Shown in pieces: positions 3,576 to 63,642 of a stretch of DNA of 64,000 bases. A program made the position numbers and the translations under genes. The notes below the pieces were generated by a model that saw only the letters and a program-made list of their open reading frames with translations, was not told the DNA's origin and made no database searches. The DNA is taken from positions 62,001 to 126,000 of the IMG/VR virus record IMGVR_UViG_3300017917_001996. One strand, given 5' to 3'. Numbering within the stretch: position 1 is the stretch's first letter; the number at the start of each line of letters is the position of its first letter.

Positions 3576-3846
3576 GATTAGGGGGCTAACCGATGAGATG
3601 ATCCAGTGGTATCGTTCCATCGGTGGTAAGTCCTTTACTCAAGAACATTGGGACTATCGCGGCAATCGAAAAGAATTAACCTTTGTTGGTTACGGCAATG
3701 GTAAATACTGTCACTATCGCAAAGATGGTACTGGTGGTGTTCGACTACACTTCAACGAAGAAGATGCAAAAATAGCAACCATGTTTATATTGCAATTTCC
3801 AGATGAAGTCGAAGCTCATAATATGGTTAAAGAACACTTTGAATAA
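3538..3846 (+). CDS. Hypothetical protein
   Basis: Open frame filling the operon gap; true start uncertain. Confidence 0.6.
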   Translation: MVLITRLRPIVLEIRGLTDEMIQWYRSIGGKSFTQEHWDYRGNRKELTFVGYGNGKYCHYRKDGTGGVRLHFNEEDAKIATMFILQFPDEVEAHNMVKEHFE

Positions 3847-3881
3847 GCGGCAACACCCCGCTAATTATAATAAATAAACGT

Positions 3882-4439
3882 ATGAAGAAACTCTATCTAT
3901 ACGTTAAACAACACAAAGTAACTGGGTTAAAATATTTTGGTATGACTGCTACAAAAGATCCATATGTGTACACCGGCTCTGGAAAATACTGGAGAAGACA
4001 CCTTAAAATTTACGGCAAAGATATAGATACGGTCAACGTCTGGGAGTTTACAGATCCGTTAGCTTGCGAAAAATTTGCACTAGATTTTTCGGAAAAAAAT
4101 AAAATCGTTGAATCATCAGATTGGGCAAATTTAAGGCCAGAAAACGGAAAAGACGGAAAGGTGCCTGGTAGTCCGGGCATGAAAAAGGAAAAAAATCCAA
4201 ACTGGGGCAAAATTAAAGAGCAAAATTCGTTTTATGGTAAAAAGCACACATCAGAGACCATTGAACTGTACAGACAACAAAAATTAGGGGGCAATAATCC
4301 TCGTGCTAAAAAAGTCACTACACCGTCAGGCAAATACAATTGTCTAAACGATGCAGCCAAGGCAGAATGTATTAATAGAGATACCCTCAGATCTAAATTA
4401 AACAATAATTTTCCTGGCTATCATTGGGGATGGCTCTAA
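3882..4439 (+). mobile_element. Free-standing GIY-YIG (Seg-like) homing endonuclease
   Basis: LYLYVKQHKVTGLKYFG...Y.GSG.YW N-terminus; NUMOD3-like NPNWGK / NSFYGKKHTSETI repeats; own TAAATA motif at 3871-3876. Confidence 0.85.
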
Positions 4440-4518
4440 ATATATAAAGCGGTCTTTTGGCATCATTCCCGCTATATAAACTCTGCTGCCTATGCTACAA
4501 TAGCCTAGGAGGACAAAA
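4437..4518 (+). promoter_or_regulatory. Late promoter plus structured queD leader (pseudoknot / anti-SD hairpin)
   Basis: TAAATA 4437-4442; stem AGCGG 4448-4452 / CCGCT 4469-4473; GGCA 4459-4462 / TGCC 4487-4490; hairpin 4489-4509 overlapping SD AGGAGG 4507-4512. Confidence 0.55.
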
Positions 4519-5016
4519 ATGCAACCTGTAGTTTACAAATATACTAGCACAAAAGAATACCACGATGCGTTTCCTTGTGCATATCGCCAATGGCGTGCTG
4601 ATAGTCACTGCAACCTAATTCACGGTTACAGTTTTAGCATGAAGTTTTACTTTGGCACCAACGATTTAGACATTCGTAATTGGGCCGCTGACTATGGCGG
4701 TCTTAAAGAACTCAAGAAAATTTTAGAAGATCAATTTGATCATACCTTGATTGTGGCACAAGACGATCCAGAGATGGAAACATTTAAACTGCTACAAGAA
4801 AAGAAAATGGCCAAGATTGTTGTACTACCACGTCTAGGCTGCGAAGGTCTTAGCGACATGCTGTACAAATTTGTCAATGGTGTTTACATTCCACAGTACT
4901 GGGGACCAGGCGAAGCAGAACGTCTATGGTGCTACCGTGTAGAAGTACGTGAAACACAGGCCAATATGGCTTTCCGCGAAGGACATCGCGAGTGGAATGA
5001 GGATTTATTTGCATGA
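4519..5016 (+). CDS. queD: 6-carboxy-5,6,7,8-tetrahydropterin synthase
   Basis: C..R.W...SHC..IHGYS and DHT..V motifs plus C-terminal V.V.ET of the PTPS/QueD family. Confidence 0.9.
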   Translation: MQPVVYKYTSTKEYHDAFPCAYRQWRADSHCNLIHGYSFSMKFYFGTNDLDIRNWAADYGGLKELKKILEDQFDHTLIVAQDDPEMETFKLLQEKKMAKIVVLPRLGCEGLSDMLYKFVNGVYIPQYWGPGEAERLWCYRVEVRETQANMAFREGHREWNEDLFA

Positions 5017-5351
5017 GCAAACTAAGATATAATATCAATAATATCGGCGGCGAAATTATCAAAGATAACGAAACCTATGTGCTACAAGACAATAAACTGC
5101 TAAAAGATCTTGTAGTCAGTAGCACATTCCTAAAGCCTAATCAAAGCACACGAGGTCACAACCATCCCGGTCAAGAAGAAGTTTATTATTTTGTTTCCGG
5201 ATCAGGTCGTATGCAGATTGACGATGAGGTCTTTGATGTAAAAGACGGTAGTGTCGTGCTGATACCCGATGGAGTGTTTCATAGGGTTTTTAACCCAACC
5301 GAAAAGCCATTGTACTTTGTCTGTGTATTTAACGGTCAGAGAAACCATTGA
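5013..5351 (+). CDS. Cupin_2 domain protein
   Basis: GHNHPGQEEVYYFVSGSG...LIPDGVFHRVFN cupin motifs. Confidence 0.85.
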   Translation: MSKLRYNINNIGGEIIKDNETYVLQDNKLLKDLVVSSTFLKPNQSTRGHNHPGQEEVYYFVSGSGRMQIDDEVFDVKDGSVVLIPDGVFHRVFNPTEKPLYFVCVFNGQRNH

Positions 5352-5376
5352 CTCTGTATTTCAAACATTCTATAAT
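5348..5376 (+). promoter_or_regulatory. Sigma70-type promoter, probably leaderless
   Basis: TTGACT-N17-TATAAT; ATG at 5383 follows the -10 after 6 nt. Confidence 0.8.
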
Positions 5377-5382
5377 ATCAAA

Positions 5383-5673
5383 ATGAATAATAAACAAAAT
5401 GAAATTCTTTTAATTACACAAGAGGAGTGCGCCGAGGTAACACAGGCTATTAGCAAGTGTTACCGATTCGGCTTAGACAATTACAAGCCTGGCAAACCAA
5501 AAACTAATAGAGAACACCTAGCCGAAGAGTTAGGAGATCTTCTAGCCATGGTCACACTGTGTCATGACTTTGGTCTAGTAGACTTTCACGAAGTCATGAC
5601 AGCCAAGGATGCTAAACTAGAAAAGCTACGTCAATGGTCAAATATTTTCAAGGTCGAAAATGAGCAAAATTAA
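5383..5673 (+). CDS. MazG-like nucleotide pyrophosphohydrolase
   Basis: QEECAEV...EELGDLLAM acidic motifs of the MazG/NTP-PPase fold; start reassigned to ATG 5383 after the promoter. Confidence 0.75.
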   Translation: MNNKQNEILLITQEECAEVTQAISKCYRFGLDNYKPGKPKTNREHLAEELGDLLAMVTLCHDFGLVDFHEVMTAKDAKLEKLRQWSNIFKVENEQN

Positions 5674-6517
5674 AATCGCAGAACTGTTTTACAGTATTCA
5701 AGGCGAAGGACGTTACATGGGCGTCCCTAGTGTGTTCTTACGCACATTTGGTTGTAACTTTACCTGTTCAGGCTTTGGTATGCCTGCTGGTGAAAAGAGC
5801 GCCGAGGTAAATGAAATTGTTTCAAGGGCACATTACTTCAAGGACTACAAAGAACTACCTTTGGTGTCTACAGGATGCGACAGCTACGCCAGTTGGCATC
5901 CTGCATTTAAAGATTTAAGCCCTATGCTAACTTCTGACGCTATTGTAGATCGCATCATGGAAATTATTCCATACAACGAGTGGCGCGACGAACATCTCGT
6001 AATCACAGGCGGTGAACCATTACTAGGTTGGCAACGTGCTTACCCAGATATGCTTGATCATCCTAAAATGCAAAGTCTAAAAGAAATTACCTTTGAGACC
6101 AATGGCACTCAAGAACTTAGTAAAGAGTTTAGACAATATCTTTTGAACTGGACCCTGGGCCGCAAGGATCGTGGATATCAAGCACTTACATTTAGTGTCA
6201 GCGCAAAGTTGCCTTGCAGTGGCGAAACTTGGGAAGATGCTATTAGACCCGACATTGTGTTAAGTTATCAGGATGTCGGTCATACCTATCTTAAATTTGT
6301 TGTAGCTACAGAACAAGATGTTGCCGACGCACTCCGTGCTACTGAAGAATTTCGCAGTGCAGGCTTCAACGGTAATGTATATCTAATGCCAGTTGGTGGC
6401 GTTGAAAGCGTGTACTCTCTAAACAACAGAGCGGTTGCCTTGCTAGCCATGAAGCACGGTCTACGCTATAGTGATAGACTTCAGGTTCCGCTTTTTAAGA
6501 ACGAGTGGGGAACTTAA
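5660..6517 (+). CDS. queE: 7-carboxy-7-deazaguanine synthase (radical SAM)
   Basis: ELFYSIQGEG...PSVFLR.FGCN, ITGGEPLL, FETNGT, S.RLQV.L motifs; cysteines spaced CX3CX36C. Confidence 0.9.
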   Translation: MSKIKIAELFYSIQGEGRYMGVPSVFLRTFGCNFTCSGFGMPAGEKSAEVNEIVSRAHYFKDYKELPLVSTGCDSYASWHPAFKDLSPMLTSDAIVDRIMEIIPYNEWRDEHLVITGGEPLLGWQRAYPDMLDHPKMQSLKEITFETNGTQELSKEFRQYLLNWTLGRKDRGYQALTFSVSAKLPCSGETWEDAIRPDIVLSYQDVGHTYLKFVVATEQDVADALRATEEFRSAGFNGNVYLMPVGGVESVYSLNNRAVALLAMKHGLRYSDRLQVPLFKNEWGT

Positions 6518-7056
6518 TGAACTTTTTCTATTACGATCTTTTCTCACCTGAAGATTGTAAAGCTATGTCGGACGAAATGTTTATGCTATATAAACACAAT
6601 CGTCTAGCCAAGGACGAAACTGTTTATACCAGCGGATCTATGGGTGCTTTTAATTTAAATTCAACCTTTGCACATTTACCAAGGATTGAAAAAAGAATTA
6701 AAAGCAATTACGGCGACAACATTAAGTTTGAAAATACATTTAGTAGAATATATCAAAACGGTAACGATTTAAAAATACACACCGACAGGCCCGGGCTTGA
6801 TATTACACTGAGTGCCTGTTTGTACACTAACCTTGATCAAGACTGGCCAATTTATGTTTCAAATGATACTGTAGACGGCATCTGGGATAACGTTGTTGAT
6901 CCTGATATATACAAACGCGACTATAAAGTTTATTCAACACCCGTAGGCACAGGTGTTGCCTGCTTGGGTACCAGATCGCCGCATTGGCGCGATACTTTAG
7001 TTTGCCGCAACGACCAATATGTGGTACAAGTTTTCTATCACTGGTCATTTACATAA
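6517..7056 (+). CDS. 2OG-Fe(II) oxygenase superfamily protein
   Basis: F.RIY..G..L..HTDR (HxD) and distal HWR motif; ATG overlaps the queE stop (TAATG). Confidence 0.75.
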   Translation: MNFFYYDLFSPEDCKAMSDEMFMLYKHNRLAKDETVYTSGSMGAFNLNSTFAHLPRIEKRIKSNYGDNIKFENTFSRIYQNGNDLKIHTDRPGLDITLSACLYTNLDQDWPIYVSNDTVDGIWDNVVDPDIYKRDYKVYSTPVGTGVACLGTRSPHWRDTLVCRNDQYVVQVFYHWSFT

Positions 7057-12625: not shown

Positions 12626-13729
12626 ATGGCTACAACCATTTCCGAAAATCGTACCGTAACTGCAACCGAAGCCCGGCGCAGTCTTATTCGTTGTTTCAAA
12701 CACCAGCGTCCAGTATTCCTGTGGGGCCCTCCTGGTATTGGCAAATCTGAATTGGTTGCTGGCATTGCCGAAGACCTTGGCGGGCACATGATCGACCTGC
12801 GTTTGGCACAAATGGATCCTACAGACATTCGTGGTATTCCGTTCTATAACAAAGACACTGGCAAAATGGATTGGGCTCCGCCAGTTGATTTGCCCGATGA
12901 AGAATTTGCAAGTCAGTACCCCGTTGTGGTTCTGTTCTTGGACGAAATGAACAGTGCGGCTCCTGCTGTTCAGGCTGTAGCATATCAGCTGATCCTGAAC
13001 CGCCGTGTTGGCAAGTATAAACTGCCTGACAACGTGGTTATGGTTGCCGCAGGTAACCGTGAAAGCGACAAAGGCGTTACTTATCGTATGCCTAGCCCGC
13101 TGGCAAACCGTTTCATTCACCTTGAAATGCGTGTTGACTTTGACTCTTGGCAGACTTGGGCTGTGAACAATCGTGTACACAAAGACGTTGTTGGTTATCT
13201 GAGCTTTGCCAAACAAGACCTGTTTGACTTTGATCCGCGTTCTAGCTCGCGTTCGTTTGCTACACCTCGTTCGTGGACCTTTGTCAGCGAACTGCTCGAC
13301 GACGATAGTGGTACTGACACTAACACCGTGGATTTGATTGCAGGTGCAGTTGGCGAAGGTCTTGCTGTTAAGTTTATGGCTCATCGCAAGGTTGCAGGTC
13401 AAATGCCTGAGCCTAGCGAAGTGCTCAAAGGTAAGGTCACTGAACTCAAGATCAAAGAAGTCAGTGCTATGTACTCCTTGACCATTAGCCTGTGCTACGA
13501 ACTCAAGGAAGCCTACGACAAAGCCGAAGGTAAGATGGACGACTGGAACAAGATGGCTGACAACTTCTTCCGTTTCATCATGGATAACTTTACCACTGAA
13601 CTGGTAGTTATGGCAAGTCGTATTGCAATTACCACTTACGGCATTCCGTTTGTGCCAGGCAAGCTCAAGACGTTTGATGAGTTCCACAAACGATTTGGCA
13701 AGTACGTGGTTGCGGCTGTGTCCAAATAA
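12626..13729 (+). CDS. MoxR-like AAA+ ATPase
   Basis: Walker A GPPGIGKS, Walker B LFLDEMN, VAAGNR, PLANRF, TPRSW. Confidence 0.9.
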   Translation: MATTISENRTVTATEARRSLIRCFKHQRPVFLWGPPGIGKSELVAGIAEDLGGHMIDLRLAQMDPTDIRGIPFYNKDTGKMDWAPPVDLPDEEFASQYPVVVLFLDEMNSAAPAVQAVAYQLILNRRVGKYKLPDNVVMVAAGNRESDKGVTYRMPSPLANRFIHLEMRVDFDSWQTWAVNNRVHKDVVGYLSFAKQDLFDFDPRSSSRSFATPRSWTFVSELLDDDSGTDTNTVDLIAGAVGEGLAVKFMAHRKVAGQMPEPSEVLKGKVTELKIKEVSAMYSLTISLCYELKEAYDKAEGKMDDWNKMADNFFRFIMDNFTTELVVMASRIAITTYGIPFVPGKLKTFDEFHKRFGKYVVAAVSK

Positions 13730-13730
13730 C

Positions 13731-13778
13731 AACAAGAGGCTTCGGCCTCTTGTTCGTTTAGCCCAAATGTCTTATAAT
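13731..13778 (+). promoter_or_regulatory. UUCG hairpin overlapping a sigma70-type promoter
   Basis: AACAAGAGGC-TTCG-GCCTCTTGTT perfect stem; TTGTTC(13750)-N17-TATAAT(13773). Confidence 0.7.
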
Positions 13779-13803
13779 AACTACAAACACACAGAAAGCC
13801 ATT

Positions 13804-15063
13804 ATGACTGATACTACTCTTTCTTCTAAAGAAAAATCCAAGACAGTTACCGACCCTCGCGTTGACAATGCGGCTCGTGAGAAACTAATCACTGCCCGCG
13901 TTGGCTTGCTGATCCGTGCAGGCTTCTTTGGTAACTTGGCTACTCGTCTCAAGTTGATTAACGCAGACGAGTGGTGCCCTACTGCGGCCACAGACGGCCG
14001 CACCTTTTGGTACAATAGCCAATTCATTAACCGTATGAGCCTTAAGGAATGTGAATTCCTGTTTGGCCACGAAGTGTTGCACGTTGTTTACGACCACCTA
14101 GGTCGTCGCGGCGATCGTGATCCTGTACTCAGTAACATTGCCGCAGACTATTGTGTAAACAGTGATCTCATTGACCATAACATTGGCCAAAAGATTACCA
14201 CTGTGCCCATTTTGTATGATCGTAAATATCGTGGCTGGAGCTACGAAGAAGTCTACGACGACTTGTACAAAAACGCCAAGAAAATCAACATGCAGGAACT
14301 TGTCAAACAACTGTTGGACGAGCACTTGGAAGGTGAAGGCGAGGGCGAAGGTGACGGTGAGGAAGTAGACGGTAGCGGCAAGGGTCGTCCGCGTCTAAGC
14401 AAGGAAGACCAAAAGGCACTACGCGACGAGATCAAGGATGCTATCCTGCAGGCTGCACAGGCGTGTGGTACAGGCGACTTACCTGCAGGCGTTCAGCGCA
14501 TGATCAAGGACCTTACCGAAAGTGTCATTGATTGGCGTGAACTGCTATTGCAACAAATCCAGAGCACCATTAAGAACGACTTTAGTTGGAACCGTCCTAA
14601 CCGTCGTGCTTGGCACATGGATGCAGTACTGCCTGGTATGAAGCCCGGCGAGACTGTGGACTTGTGCATTGCCATTGACACTTCGGGCAGTATCGGTAAC
14701 GAAGAACTCAAGATCTTCTTGAGCGAGATCAAGGGCATCATGGATAGCTACGATGACTACAAGATTCAAGTGTGGAGTTTTGACACTGATGTCTACAACC
14801 TGCAGGAATTTACTCAAGACAACATGAAAGACATTCTTGAGTACGAACCCAAGGGCGGTGGTGGCACAGACTTCATGGCTAACTGGGAATTCATGAAAAC
14901 AAACGGCATTGAACCCAAGAAGTTTGTTATGTTCACTGATGGTTATCCATTTGGTAGCTGGGGTGACGAAAACTACTGCGATACTGTGTTCATCATTAAA
15001 GGTAACCCCGGTGCCAAGCCTCCATTTGGTATTTGGGCACACTACGAGGATGCTAAAAAATGA
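13804..15063 (+). CDS. Putative metallopeptidase (HExxH) plus vWA domain protein (DUF2201-like)
   Basis: TAATDG, HEVLH, C-terminal MIDAS-type IDTSGS, GGGGTDF and FTDG motifs; usual partner of MoxR ATPases. Confidence 0.85.
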   Translation: MTDTTLSSKEKSKTVTDPRVDNAAREKLITARVGLLIRAGFFGNLATRLKLINADEWCPTAATDGRTFWYNSQFINRMSLKECEFLFGHEVLHVVYDHLGRRGDRDPVLSNIAADYCVNSDLIDHNIGQKITTVPILYDRKYRGWSYEEVYDDLYKNAKKINMQELVKQLLDEHLEGEGEGEGDGEEVDGSGKGRPRLSKEDQKALRDEIKDAILQAAQACGTGDLPAGVQRMIKDLTESVIDWRELLLQQIQSTIKNDFSWNRPNRRAWHMDAVLPGMKPGETVDLCIAIDTSGSIGNEELKIFLSEIKGIMDSYDDYKIQVWSFDTDVYNLQEFTQDNMKDILEYEPKGGGGTDFMANWEFMKTNGIEPKKFVMFTDGYPFGSWGDENYCDTVFIIKGNPGAKPPFGIWAHYEDAKK

Positions 15064-22600: not shown

Positions 22601-22628
22601 AGTATATTATTTATTCAGAAAAACCACC

Positions 22629-53121: not shown

Positions 53122-53997
53122 ATTAAACACAACTATTTAAACAATAAGGATATACTCAAAGAGATACATCGCAGTAAAAATACCTATTGTGTTTACTCCA
53201 GCCCAGAGTATTCCGATTACGATCTTATCATCAATGACGTTTCTGCAATAACCGCCGAAGTAGTCAATCAAGCTCGAAATAATCGAGCAGAGCGTTTAGC
53301 CAAACTAGCACACGAGCAGGCTACTTCCGGCGGCGAAAAGCGAAAATTAGACGAATTTTATATTGATCCTGTTACTATCAAAGACTCAGAAATCATCTTC
53401 CGAGTAATGACCTGGGATCACGTACCCGTACAGCCTACCGTTAAAAAGGCCACAGATGTAGAAGTTGAAGATGAAATTCATACTGAATATGATATCGAAG
53501 ATGACGCAGTTAAGCTACCGACTGCTGCTGTCAAGTATGTTAAGTGTAATTTTCCTCCATTCCAACACTATAAATTCAACGAAGCAGGTAAGCTCGATTG
53601 CGTAGGCAAGAGCCACTGGAAGGGCCCATTGGACAGTGGAGAATGGTGCAGAGACCACGGTACAATGACCAAAACGTTAGCTACTATGTTTATGAAACTG
53701 TGTGAGCGTTATGCTACACGTAGCAACTGGCGTGGGTACACTTATAATGACGAAATGCGTAGCCAAGCTCTGCTACAGTTAAGTCAAATTGGTTTGCAGT
53801 TTGATGAATCTAAATCACAGAACCCATTTGCTTATTATACTGCTGCTATCACTAATAGTTTCACTCGTGTGCTAAACATCGAAAAACGTAATCAAAACCT
53901 ACGCGATGATATACTAGAAATGAATAACTTTAACCCAAGTTACACACGACAAGGACTAATGAGCGGAGCACATTACGGCGACGGAGACCACGATTAA
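53122..53997 (+). CDS. gp55: Late-transcription sigma factor, gp55-like; N-terminus extended to a non-canonical ATT start
   Basis: NYLNNKDILKEI N-terminal motif; KLCERYA.R.NWRGYTY.DEM and FDE.KSQNPFAYYT...NSF.R.L..EK motifs; frame open from 53110 with no in-frame ATG/GTG/TTG until 53407. Confidence 0.85.
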   Translation: MKHNYLNNKDILKEIHRSKNTYCVYSSPEYSDYDLIINDVSAITAEVVNQARNNRAERLAKLAHEQATSGGEKRKLDEFYIDPVTIKDSEIIFRVMTWDHVPVQPTVKKATDVEVEDEIHTEYDIEDDAVKLPTAAVKYVKCNFPPFQHYKFNEAGKLDCVGKSHWKGPLDSGEWCRDHGTMTKTLATMFMKLCERYATRSNWRGYTYNDEMRSQALLQLSQIGLQFDESKSQNPFAYYTAAITNSFTRVLNIEKRNQNLRDDILEMNNFNPSYTRQGLMSGAHYGDGDHD

Positions 53998-61905: not shown

Positions 61906-63642
61906 ATGTCTTGGAAAAAATATTTTAAATCGCACAATGTAGCCAGCATAAGTCCGATTGGTTCTACGGTAATGCCGAGCCAAGCGCCTAGCTATCGCAA
62001 CTATCAAAGCTCGTTACCCGAAGTCTACATTGGGCATCCTAACCGTTTAGAGCGTTATAATCAGTACGAACAAATGGATATGGACAGCGAAGTTAACGCA
62101 GCTTTGGACATTTTAGCCGAATTTAGCAGCCAGCCCGAAGAGTCTACTGGTATGCCTTTTACTATCGATTATAAAGAAAAACCCACGGATACTGAAGTTG
62201 AGATAATCAAAGAACAGCTACAACAATGGATAACATTAAATGATCTAAAAAAGAGAATTTTCAAGATTGTGCGTAACACCCTAAAATATGGCGATCAGGT
62301 GTTTGTTCGCGATCCAGAAACATTCCAACTTTACTGGGTTGAAATGAGTAAAGTTGTTAAGATTATTGTTAACGAAGCCAAGGGCAAAGAGCCCGAGCAG
62401 TATATTGTTAAAGAAGTTGCTCCTAACTTACAGAATTTAACTGTTACGGCAGTTACTACATCTGACACCTATATGAACCATCCACAAGTTGGTGGCCCAA
62501 GCGGTGCTTATGTACAACCTAATGCACCTTTTGCTGGTGGTAGTCGCTTTACTCATGCACAAAATGAAACAGCAATTAATGCTGAACATATAGTTCATTT
62601 AAGCCTAACTGAAGGGTTAGACCTATTCTGGCCATTTGGTAATAGCGTATTAGAAAACATCTTTAAAGTATTCAAACAAAAAGAATTGCTTGAAGATGCT
62701 ATCATTATCTATCGTGTACAACGTGCTCCTGAGCGTAGAATCTTTAAGATTGATGTAGGTAACATGCCGAGTCACATGGCTATGGCTTATGTAGAACGCA
62801 TTAAAAATGAAATATGGCAACGCCGTATTCCTACACAAACAGGCGGCGGTGCTAACATGATGGATGCAACTTACAATCCGTTAAGCACCAACGAAGATTA
62901 CTTCTTTCCTGTAACAGCCGACGGACGAGGAAGTAGTGTAGACACACTACAGGGTGGAACAAATCTAGGCGAAATTACAGATTTACAATTCTTTACTAAC
63001 AAGTTATTCCGTGGTTTGCGTATTCCTAGCAGTTATTTGCCTACAGGCACAGATGATGGAACACAAGCAGTTAACGACGGGCGTGTAGGTACTGCACTTA
63101 TTCAAGAATGGCGCTTTAATCGCTATTGTATTCGTTTACAAAATATGATCTGCGGTAAACTAGACCAAGAGTTTAAGATGTTTATGCGTTGGAGAGGCAT
63201 TAACATTGATGGACAATTGTTTGAACTTAGGTTAAACGAACCGCAGAACTTTGCACAGTATCGTCAAACCGAAGTTGATGCAGCTAGAATTAGTACATAT
63301 GCACAATTAGAGCCTTTGCCTTACTTTAGTAAGCGTTTCTTAATGAAGCGTTATCTTGGTCTCAATGAGCAAGAGATGCAAGAAAACGAAGAAATGTGGC
63401 TAGAAGAGCAAGGCGAAACTAAGCCAGCAGACCAAATGGATGTTGGTCTAAGAAGCGTTGGAATTACACCTGGATCTATCAGTGGTGACCTATCGCAAGC
63501 TGAAGCATTACCAGCAGCTGGAGAAATGCCGCAGGGTGGTATGCCTGGCGAGATTGGTGCTCCAAGTGGAATGCCGGCTCCTGGTATTCAAGGTGGTGGC
63601 GCACCAGGCGGTATTCCAGCTGGCCCTACAGGCGTAATTTAA
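61906..63642 (+). CDS. gp20: Portal vertex protein
   Basis: EV..ALD..A, K.FKQ..LLEDA.IIYR..RAPERR.F.IDVGNMP, EDY.FP...GR...V.TL.GG.NLGEI.D..FF..KL..GL.IP.S motifs. Confidence 0.95.
   Translation: MSWKKYFKSHNVASISPIGSTVMPSQAPSYRNYQSSLPEVYIGHPNRLERYNQYEQMDMDSEVNAALDILAEFSSQPEESTGMPFTIDYKEKPTDTEVEIIKEQLQQWITLNDLKKRIFKIVRNTLKYGDQVFVRDPETFQLYWVEMSKVVKIIVNEAKGKEPEQYIVKEVAPNLQNLTVTAVTTSDTYMNHPQVGGPSGAYVQPNAPFAGGSRFTHAQNETAINAEHIVHLSLTEGLDLFWPFGNSVLENIFKVFKQKELLEDAIIIYRVQRAPERRIFKIDVGNMPSHMAMAYVERIKNEIWQRRIPTQTGGGANMMDATYNPLSTNEDYFFPVTADGRGSSVDTLQGGTNLGEITDLQFFTNKLFRGLRIPSSYLPTGTDDGTQAVNDGRVGTALIQEWRFNRYCIRLQNMICGKLDQEFKMFMRWRGINIDGQLFELRLNEPQNFAQYRQTEVDAARISTYAQLEPLPYFSKRFLMKRYLGLNEQEMQENEEMWLEEQGETKPADQMDVGLRSVGITPGSISGDLSQAEALPAAGEMPQGGMPGEIGAPSGMPAPGIQGGGAPGGIPAGPTGVI

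Follow-up and report, generated by a model that had tools for sequence, protein, structure and literature searches.

A conserved preQ1-like pseudoknot, and predicted translational switch, in the leader of a phage queD-like gene

The locus and its genomic setting

The sequence examined here is a stretch of 64,000 nucleotides (the window, positions 62,001 to 126,000 of IMG/VR record IMGVR_UViG_3300017917_001996). It is part of a large T4-like myophage and encodes a gp55-type late sigma factor, gp46/47-like nuclease subunits, a portal and baseplate proteins. The nearest cultured portals (from PA5oct-like Pseudomonas phages, Phosso and Atu_ph07) are only about 50% identical, and no DNA match was found in the phage collection searched. 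The DNA is found in a pond metagenome.

Within this window, a leader of about 70 bases precedes a gene of the PTPS/QueD family (Pfam PTPS, E = 9.5e-14). This gene was called queD in a first-pass annotation. It is, however, a divergent QueD-like PTPS. It carries CxxxHGY in place of the QueD signature CxxxHGH (PMC10516641), and it scores 32 bits against a cut-off of 89 in the NCBIfam QueD model. It may therefore have a different T-fold activity. The ORF upstream of the leader, which resembles a Seg/GIY-YIG homing endonuclease, ends with a stop codon that overlaps a TAAATA box, so the element is intergenic.

After the QueD-like gene come genes for a cupin, a MazG-like protein, a divergent QueE-like radical SAM protein (about 51 bits against cut-offs above 200) and an unassigned protein that PHROG labelled ferrochelatase. 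Most of these overlap or are closely packed. The overlapping stop and start codons suggest that they are probably co-regulated. No QueC, FolE or DpdA was found among the ORFs examined in the 64 kb.

Table 1. Features of the leader and of the surrounding window. Positions are numbered from the first base of the window.
Feature	Position	Strand	Sequence	Remarks
Bax1-I family membrane protein	872-1549
Homing endonuclease-like ORF	3882-4439			Seg/GIY-YIG-like; immediately upstream of the leader
T4-type late-promoter-like box	4437-4442	+	TAAATA	Ends 5 nt before P1; promoter function inferred
P1, 5' strand	4448-4452	+	AGCGG	Pairs with 4469-4473
Loop	4453-4468	+		16 nt, starting with U and ending with C
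L1	4453-4458	+	UCUUUU	3-11 nt in relatives; always starts N-C-U
P2, 5' strand	4459-4465	+	GGCA-U-CA	The U lies opposite C in a conserved mismatch
L2	4466-4468	+	UUC	C4468 invariant, candidate ligand-pairing base; L2 is UC in 116, UUC in 8, CC in 5 and AC in 5 of 134 aptamers
P1, 3' strand	4469-4473	+	CCGCU
L3	4474-4483	+	AUAUAAACUC	A-rich linker; N-U-A-N-A-A-A-Y-U-C, with invariant A, A, A, U and C positions
P2, 3' strand (switch segment)	4484-4490	+	UG-C-UGCC	Pairs with 4459-4465 or with the ribosome-binding region
Sequestor hairpin	4489-4509	+	CCUA-U-GCUA-CAA-UAGC-C-UAGG	Buries AGG of the Shine-Dalgarno sequence; C4489 and C4490 shared with P2
Extended -10-like box	4491-4501		TGCTACAAT	In the loop of the sequestor hairpin
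Shine-Dalgarno sequence (SD)	4507-4512	+	AGGAGG	6 nt before the ATG
QueD-like PTPS (T-fold) gene	4519-5016	+		165 aa; ATG at 4519
Cupin	5013-5351	+
MazG-like protein	about 5380-5673	+
QueE-like radical SAM protein	5660-6517	+
Unassigned ORF	6505-7056	+		PHROG labelled ferrochelatase
CobS-like ATPase followed by a DUF2201/VWA protein	12626-15063
ORF of 3735 aa	32003-43210	-		Among other very long ORFs that are probably structural
gp55-like late sigma factor	53407-53997

The first-pass annotation had described the leader as a preQ1-I-like pseudoknot competing with a hairpin that sequesters the SD. Every element that it listed is present at the position given. On its own, however, the sequence of the leader is unremarkable. 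Its minimum free energy is -17.4 kcal/mol (z = -0.22), and 75 of 200 shuffled sequences fold as well. The evidence that the structure is more than chance is comparative.

Comparative evidence for the pseudoknot

A search with the QueD-like protein returned 80 IMG/VR loci, out of at least 591. The 110 nt upstream of these genes showed an almost invariant leader with visible compensatory changes. A covariance model built from 56 distinct sequences finds exactly one copy in the window (57.9 bits) and one copy in 78 of the 80 loci, always in front of the gene. Overall, the leader occurs in hundreds of uncultured freshwater T4-like phage contigs, giving 134 distinct aptamer sequences.

In the covariance-model alignment, P1 is 99.7% paired across 60 distinct sequences, with two-sided changes at three of its five pairs (A-U/U-A, G-C/C-G and C-G/A-U/U-A). 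Among the 134 distinct aptamers, P1 occurs in seven Watson-Crick versions, and 131 of the 134 are fully paired.

The pseudoknot helix P2 is longer than the four pairs proposed in the first-pass annotation (GGCA 4459-4462 with UGCC 4487-4490). These are followed by a conserved U·C mismatch and then by CA/UG. The inner pair is A-U in 128 sequences and G-C in 6, and is never mixed. The outer part takes many forms, including GGCAU/AUGCC, GACGC/GUGUC, GGCUU/AAGCC, GGCG/CGCC, UGGACA/UGUCUA and ACG-U-CAU/AUG-U-CGU.

The covariance-model alignment placed several P2 variants out of register, and was replaced for the analysis of this helix by direct parsing and by a gap-free alignment that was not fitted to any structure. 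Here, P2 is 83.8% paired, against 68% for shuffles and at most 42% for slid partners. Six of its seven pairs show two-sided changes, and the covariation score is 0.394 against 0.171 for shuffles (0 of 500 reach it). These controls do not, of course, fully remove phylogenetic relatedness. However, the variants are spread over different promoter and platform types. An alignment-free test gives the same answer, with cognate loop-tail pairs binding better than non-cognate pairs (-6.29 against -5.07 kcal/mol; 0 of 5000 permutations reach this). Frequent G·U pairs show that the selected strand is the mRNA sense strand.

The unpaired bases are also informative. The base that begins the loop, noted as U in the first-pass annotation, is not conserved (U, C or A), but the next two bases, CU, are. 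Invariant unpaired bases are found in L3 and at the junction of the helices, where they are typical of a binding pocket. C4468 lies in the position of C17 of preQ1-I, and its role in ligand pairing is inferred by analogy (PMC11625349).

Position of the leader in the transcript

The DNA upstream of P1 is unrelated among loci, except for a promoter. Of 57 distinct upstream regions, 36 carry TAAATA or TAAGTA 4-12 nt before P1, and about 16 carry instead a full TTGAC-N17-TATAAT, often with the extended TG, ending 7-9 nt before P1. Two different promoter types placed in the same way imply that the RNA begins at the foot of P1.

The TAAATA before the leader may be a T4-type late promoter (a TATAAATA-like box a few bases before the transcript start in a phage with a gp55-type sigma factor), but promoter function is inferred. 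TAAATA is under-represented in the window (50 found, 84 expected), and it lies 8-40 nt before many structural-gene starts on both strands (for example at 22608, 31180, 46757, 53038, 59055 and 61879). The distance of 77 nt from the box to the ATG of the QueD-like gene is unusually long.

No terminator-like site was found in positions 3800-5200. P1 is followed by AUAUAAAC, not by a U tract. This rules out the idea that P1 terminates the upstream gene. Likewise, the promoter scan reports nothing inside the leader of the window. In type A leaders (defined below), however, the loop of the sequestor hairpin keeps TGnTAnnnT, as in locus L005 at 2975-2995. In many relatives, TTTACA in L3 and the hairpin loop together (TTTACA-N18-TGCTATAAT) read as a good promoter. 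This may be a real second, sigma-70 promoter, producing a transcript that lacks the switch.

Association with PTPS/QueD genes

Viral contigs were scanned with a pattern taken from the conserved core of the motif. This gave 119 hits, of which 116 have a complementary P1. Of the 117 with enough downstream DNA, 116 are directly followed by a PTPS/QueD-family gene. These genes fall into four subfamilies at 33-100% identity: 56 are of the window type, 36 and 23 are of two other types at 33-58% identity, and 1 is a canonical QueD. The single exception has a homing-endonuclease gene inserted between the leader and the PTPS gene. In locus L373 (about 4990-5950), an endonuclease ORF related to that upstream of the leader in the window separates the switch from its PTPS gene by about 1 kb.

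Conversely, in 80 loci found through the QueE-like protein, the motif is present in 12, exactly those that also carry a PTPS gene. In locus L040 (2554-3495), one leader precedes a canonical QueD (CxxxHGH) followed by the window-type paralogue. The queD leaders of the cultured phages Phosso, ACP17 and X1 lack the motif.

The expression platform

The 3' strand of P2 is also complementary to the ribosome-binding region, and this complementarity takes three sequence designs. In type A leaders (the window and many others), CC of the P2 strand starts a stem, CCUAUG/CAUAGG, that covers the SD. In the window, this stem is CCUA...UAGG plus an inner GCUA/UAGC. In type B leaders, UG(C/U)C(A/G)UC pairs with GAUGGCA, covering the start codon. 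In types C and D, UG(C/U)CAUUG(UU) pairs with (AA)CAAUGGCA. Between types B and C, the pair next to the AUG changes from C-G to U-A in 8 of 26 sequences, and all single changes are wobble-compatible. The outer type A stem, kept in 33 type A leaders, is almost invariant, and is therefore supported by conservation rather than by covariation. Further, the window's own sequestor-RBS duplex is the weakest of the set (z = 0.0).

The consequence of knot formation was modeled by blocking both strands of P2. This raises the mean unpaired probability of the SD from 0.32 to 0.65, with a rise in 45 of 59 leaders and a fall in 2; blocking L3 instead gives 0.33. In types B to D, the AUG goes from fully paired to partly open. 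In the window, the sequestor hairpin (about -8.8 kcal/mol) and the P2 duplex (about -6.9 kcal/mol) are close in energy. A switch needs the two states to be balanced in this way. Because the aptamer strand is itself the anti-SD or anti-AUG sequence, knot formation and sequestration are mutually exclusive, and the predicted logic is ON.

A translational switch and its alternatives

The explanation favored here, with moderate confidence, is that the leader is a cis-acting translational riboswitch at the extreme 5' end of the mRNA of a QueD-like operon. Without ligand, the switch segment would pair with the ribosome-binding region and block initiation. A ligand stacked between P1 and P2, and paired to the invariant C, would stabilize P2, hold the switch segment, and release the SD and AUG. 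This would turn on translation of QueD and, through overlapping reading frames, of the downstream genes. The helices, the alternative pairing and the gene association rest on the comparisons above. That a small molecule drives the switch, that this molecule is guanine-like, and that the polarity is ON are inferences, made without ligand, binding or expression data.

Candidate ligands are preQ0, preQ1, another 7-deazaguanine, guanine, or a pterin such as the QueD substrate. ON control of a biosynthetic gene by the product of its pathway would, of course, be unusual. Signals of a substrate or demand type, such as this pterin, or guanine released when a transglycosylase swaps bases in DNA, are to be considered alongside preQ0 and preQ1. 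A more tentative possibility is that the leader represents a new riboswitch class, derived from or convergent with the preQ1-I fold, carried only by large freshwater phages, and responsive to something other than preQ1 (preQ0, CDG, guanine from DNA transglycosylation, or the pterin substrate of QueD). Such a switch would couple synthesis of the phage's 7-deazaguanine DNA modification to precursor supply or demand.

Those parts of the first-pass interpretation that can be tested by computation held up. The leader is a conserved H-type pseudoknot, its P2 3' strand competes with a helix that buries the ribosome-binding site, it resembles preQ1-I without being a canonical member, and knot formation would free rather than hide the SD.

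The strongest of the alternatives, although unlikely, is a structured element that senses no metabolite. Here, the 5' pseudoknot would stabilize or protect the mRNA, and the balance between knot and sequestor would set a fixed, or temperature-dependent, level of translation. The structures are real, the two states are nearly isoenergetic, and the hosts live in ponds and lakes where temperature varies. However, invariant unpaired bases at the P1/P2 junction and in L3 are not needed for a simple stability element or thermometer. The similarity to a known ligand-binding fold and the link to QueD-type genes both point to a metabolite.

Somewhat more doubtful is a protein operator, where a phage or host protein (the QueD-like protein itself, for example, or a translational repressor or activator) binds the pseudoknot and sets translation. 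T4-type phages appear to use RNA operators, including a 5' pseudoknot in gene 32 mRNA, and conserved single-stranded bases could be protein contacts. The same leader, however, serves four PTPS subfamilies, divergent to 33-58% identity, which argues against autoregulation by the product. Further, the motif is very small, and it shares the preQ1-I signature.

A conventional OFF-type preQ1-I riboswitch, where the ligand-bound knot hinders the ribosome, is improbable. The review consulted lists only repressive modes for preQ1 riboswitches (PMC11625349), and a type I knot separated from the SD still represses (PMC10018353). In the phage leaders, however, the P2 3' strand is itself the anti-SD or anti-AUG sequence in three independent designs. 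The unbound state is therefore already predicted to be closed, with knot formation opening the site, and the knot ends 15-25 nt before the SD. Last, a DNA-level signal (a terminator or a sigma-70 promoter) is contradicted as a sole explanation, as a promoter cannot explain compensatory changes and G·U pairs in two crossing helices, and as type B, C and D leaders lack the -10-like box but keep the knot.

Comparison with known systems

Riboswitches are rare in phages. No report of one on a phage queD or 7-deazaguanine gene was found, nor do the papers consulted on phage 7-deazaguanine pathways mention one, although subscription-only papers were not covered and prior description cannot be excluded. 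The element appears to be undescribed. A relative of the preQ1-I fold that activates translation would show how a minimal pseudoknot aptamer can be rewired, and possibly retuned to a different ligand. It would also give a first handle on how phages regulate the pathway that hypermodifies their DNA against host restriction. With an aptamer of only about 44 nt, it would be a compact natural ON switch.

The element is not filed here as a member of Rfam RF00522 (PreQ1). A scan of the whole window with Rfam found nothing at gathering threshold, and no PreQ1 hit appeared at E <= 10 on the leaders of the window or of loci L021 and L042. The best result, on the leader of locus L056, was 14.6 bits against a cut-off of 39 (E = 0.5). 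This sub-threshold hit is in the correct register, and PreQ1 is one of only two families reported for that leader. For preQ1-II (RF01054) and preQ1-III (RF02680), the only result was a match of the two flanks of the preQ1-II model to the hairpin-to-start region of the same leader (positions 2968-2997; 18.1 bits, E = 0.45), with the 69-position core missing. This is probably chance.

The closest known system is the preQ1-I riboswitch of type I. This type has UC before the P1 3' strand, UU after the P1 5' strand and a conserved C in the tail, and binds two stacked ligands (PMC11625349). The type I sequence from Carnobacterium antarcticum (PMC10018353) reads UGUGG UUCGCAACCAUC CCACA UAAAAAAA CU AGGAGG, and a phage leader reads, for example, AGAGG ACUUUAGGCAUUCAUC CCUCU AUAAAAAUU CU GCAUGCC. 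Both are H-type pseudoknots with a 5-bp P1, and they share GG/CC at the top of P1, CAUC immediately before the P1 3' strand (with the final C as presumed Watson-Crick partner of the ligand), an A-rich L3, and C-U entering P2. Both lie in the 5' leader of a 7-deazaguanine pathway gene. UC or UUC precedes the P1 3' strand in 124 of the 134 phage aptamers.

The phage element differs from type I in that its loop is 13-19 nt rather than about 12, its L1 is N-C-U plus a variable stretch rather than UU, and its L3 has two extra bases (Y-U) before the conserved C. U-C precedes P2 where preQ1-I has A-C, placing a U where preQ1-I has the ligand-contacting A. P2 has 7-10 positions with a conserved U·C mismatch, rather than 3-4 bp. 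The SD lies outside the knot, the predicted logic is ON rather than OFF, and the element has been found only in uncultured phage contigs.

Types II and III of preQ1-I (Bacillus subtilis, Thermoanaerobacter tengcongensis, Escherichia coli) share the overall fold and an AGAGG/CCUCU-type P1, and some relatives of the phage leader carry exactly AGAGG/CCUCU. Those types, however, have AC before the P1 3' strand, found in only 5 of the 134 phage aptamers, and they repress by termination or by burial of the SD.

The logic proposed here is that of translational ON riboswitches such as the adenine add riboswitch, where a strand of the aptamer appears likewise to serve as the anti-SD, so that ligand binding frees the ribosome-binding site. 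There, the fold would be a three-way junction rather than a pseudoknot, and the gene context is different. The pseudoknot at the 5' end of T4 gene 32 mRNA is comparable in that it appears to be a small H-type knot that controls translation in a T4-type phage, but it probably nucleates binding of its own protein product and appears to have no metabolite-type pocket.
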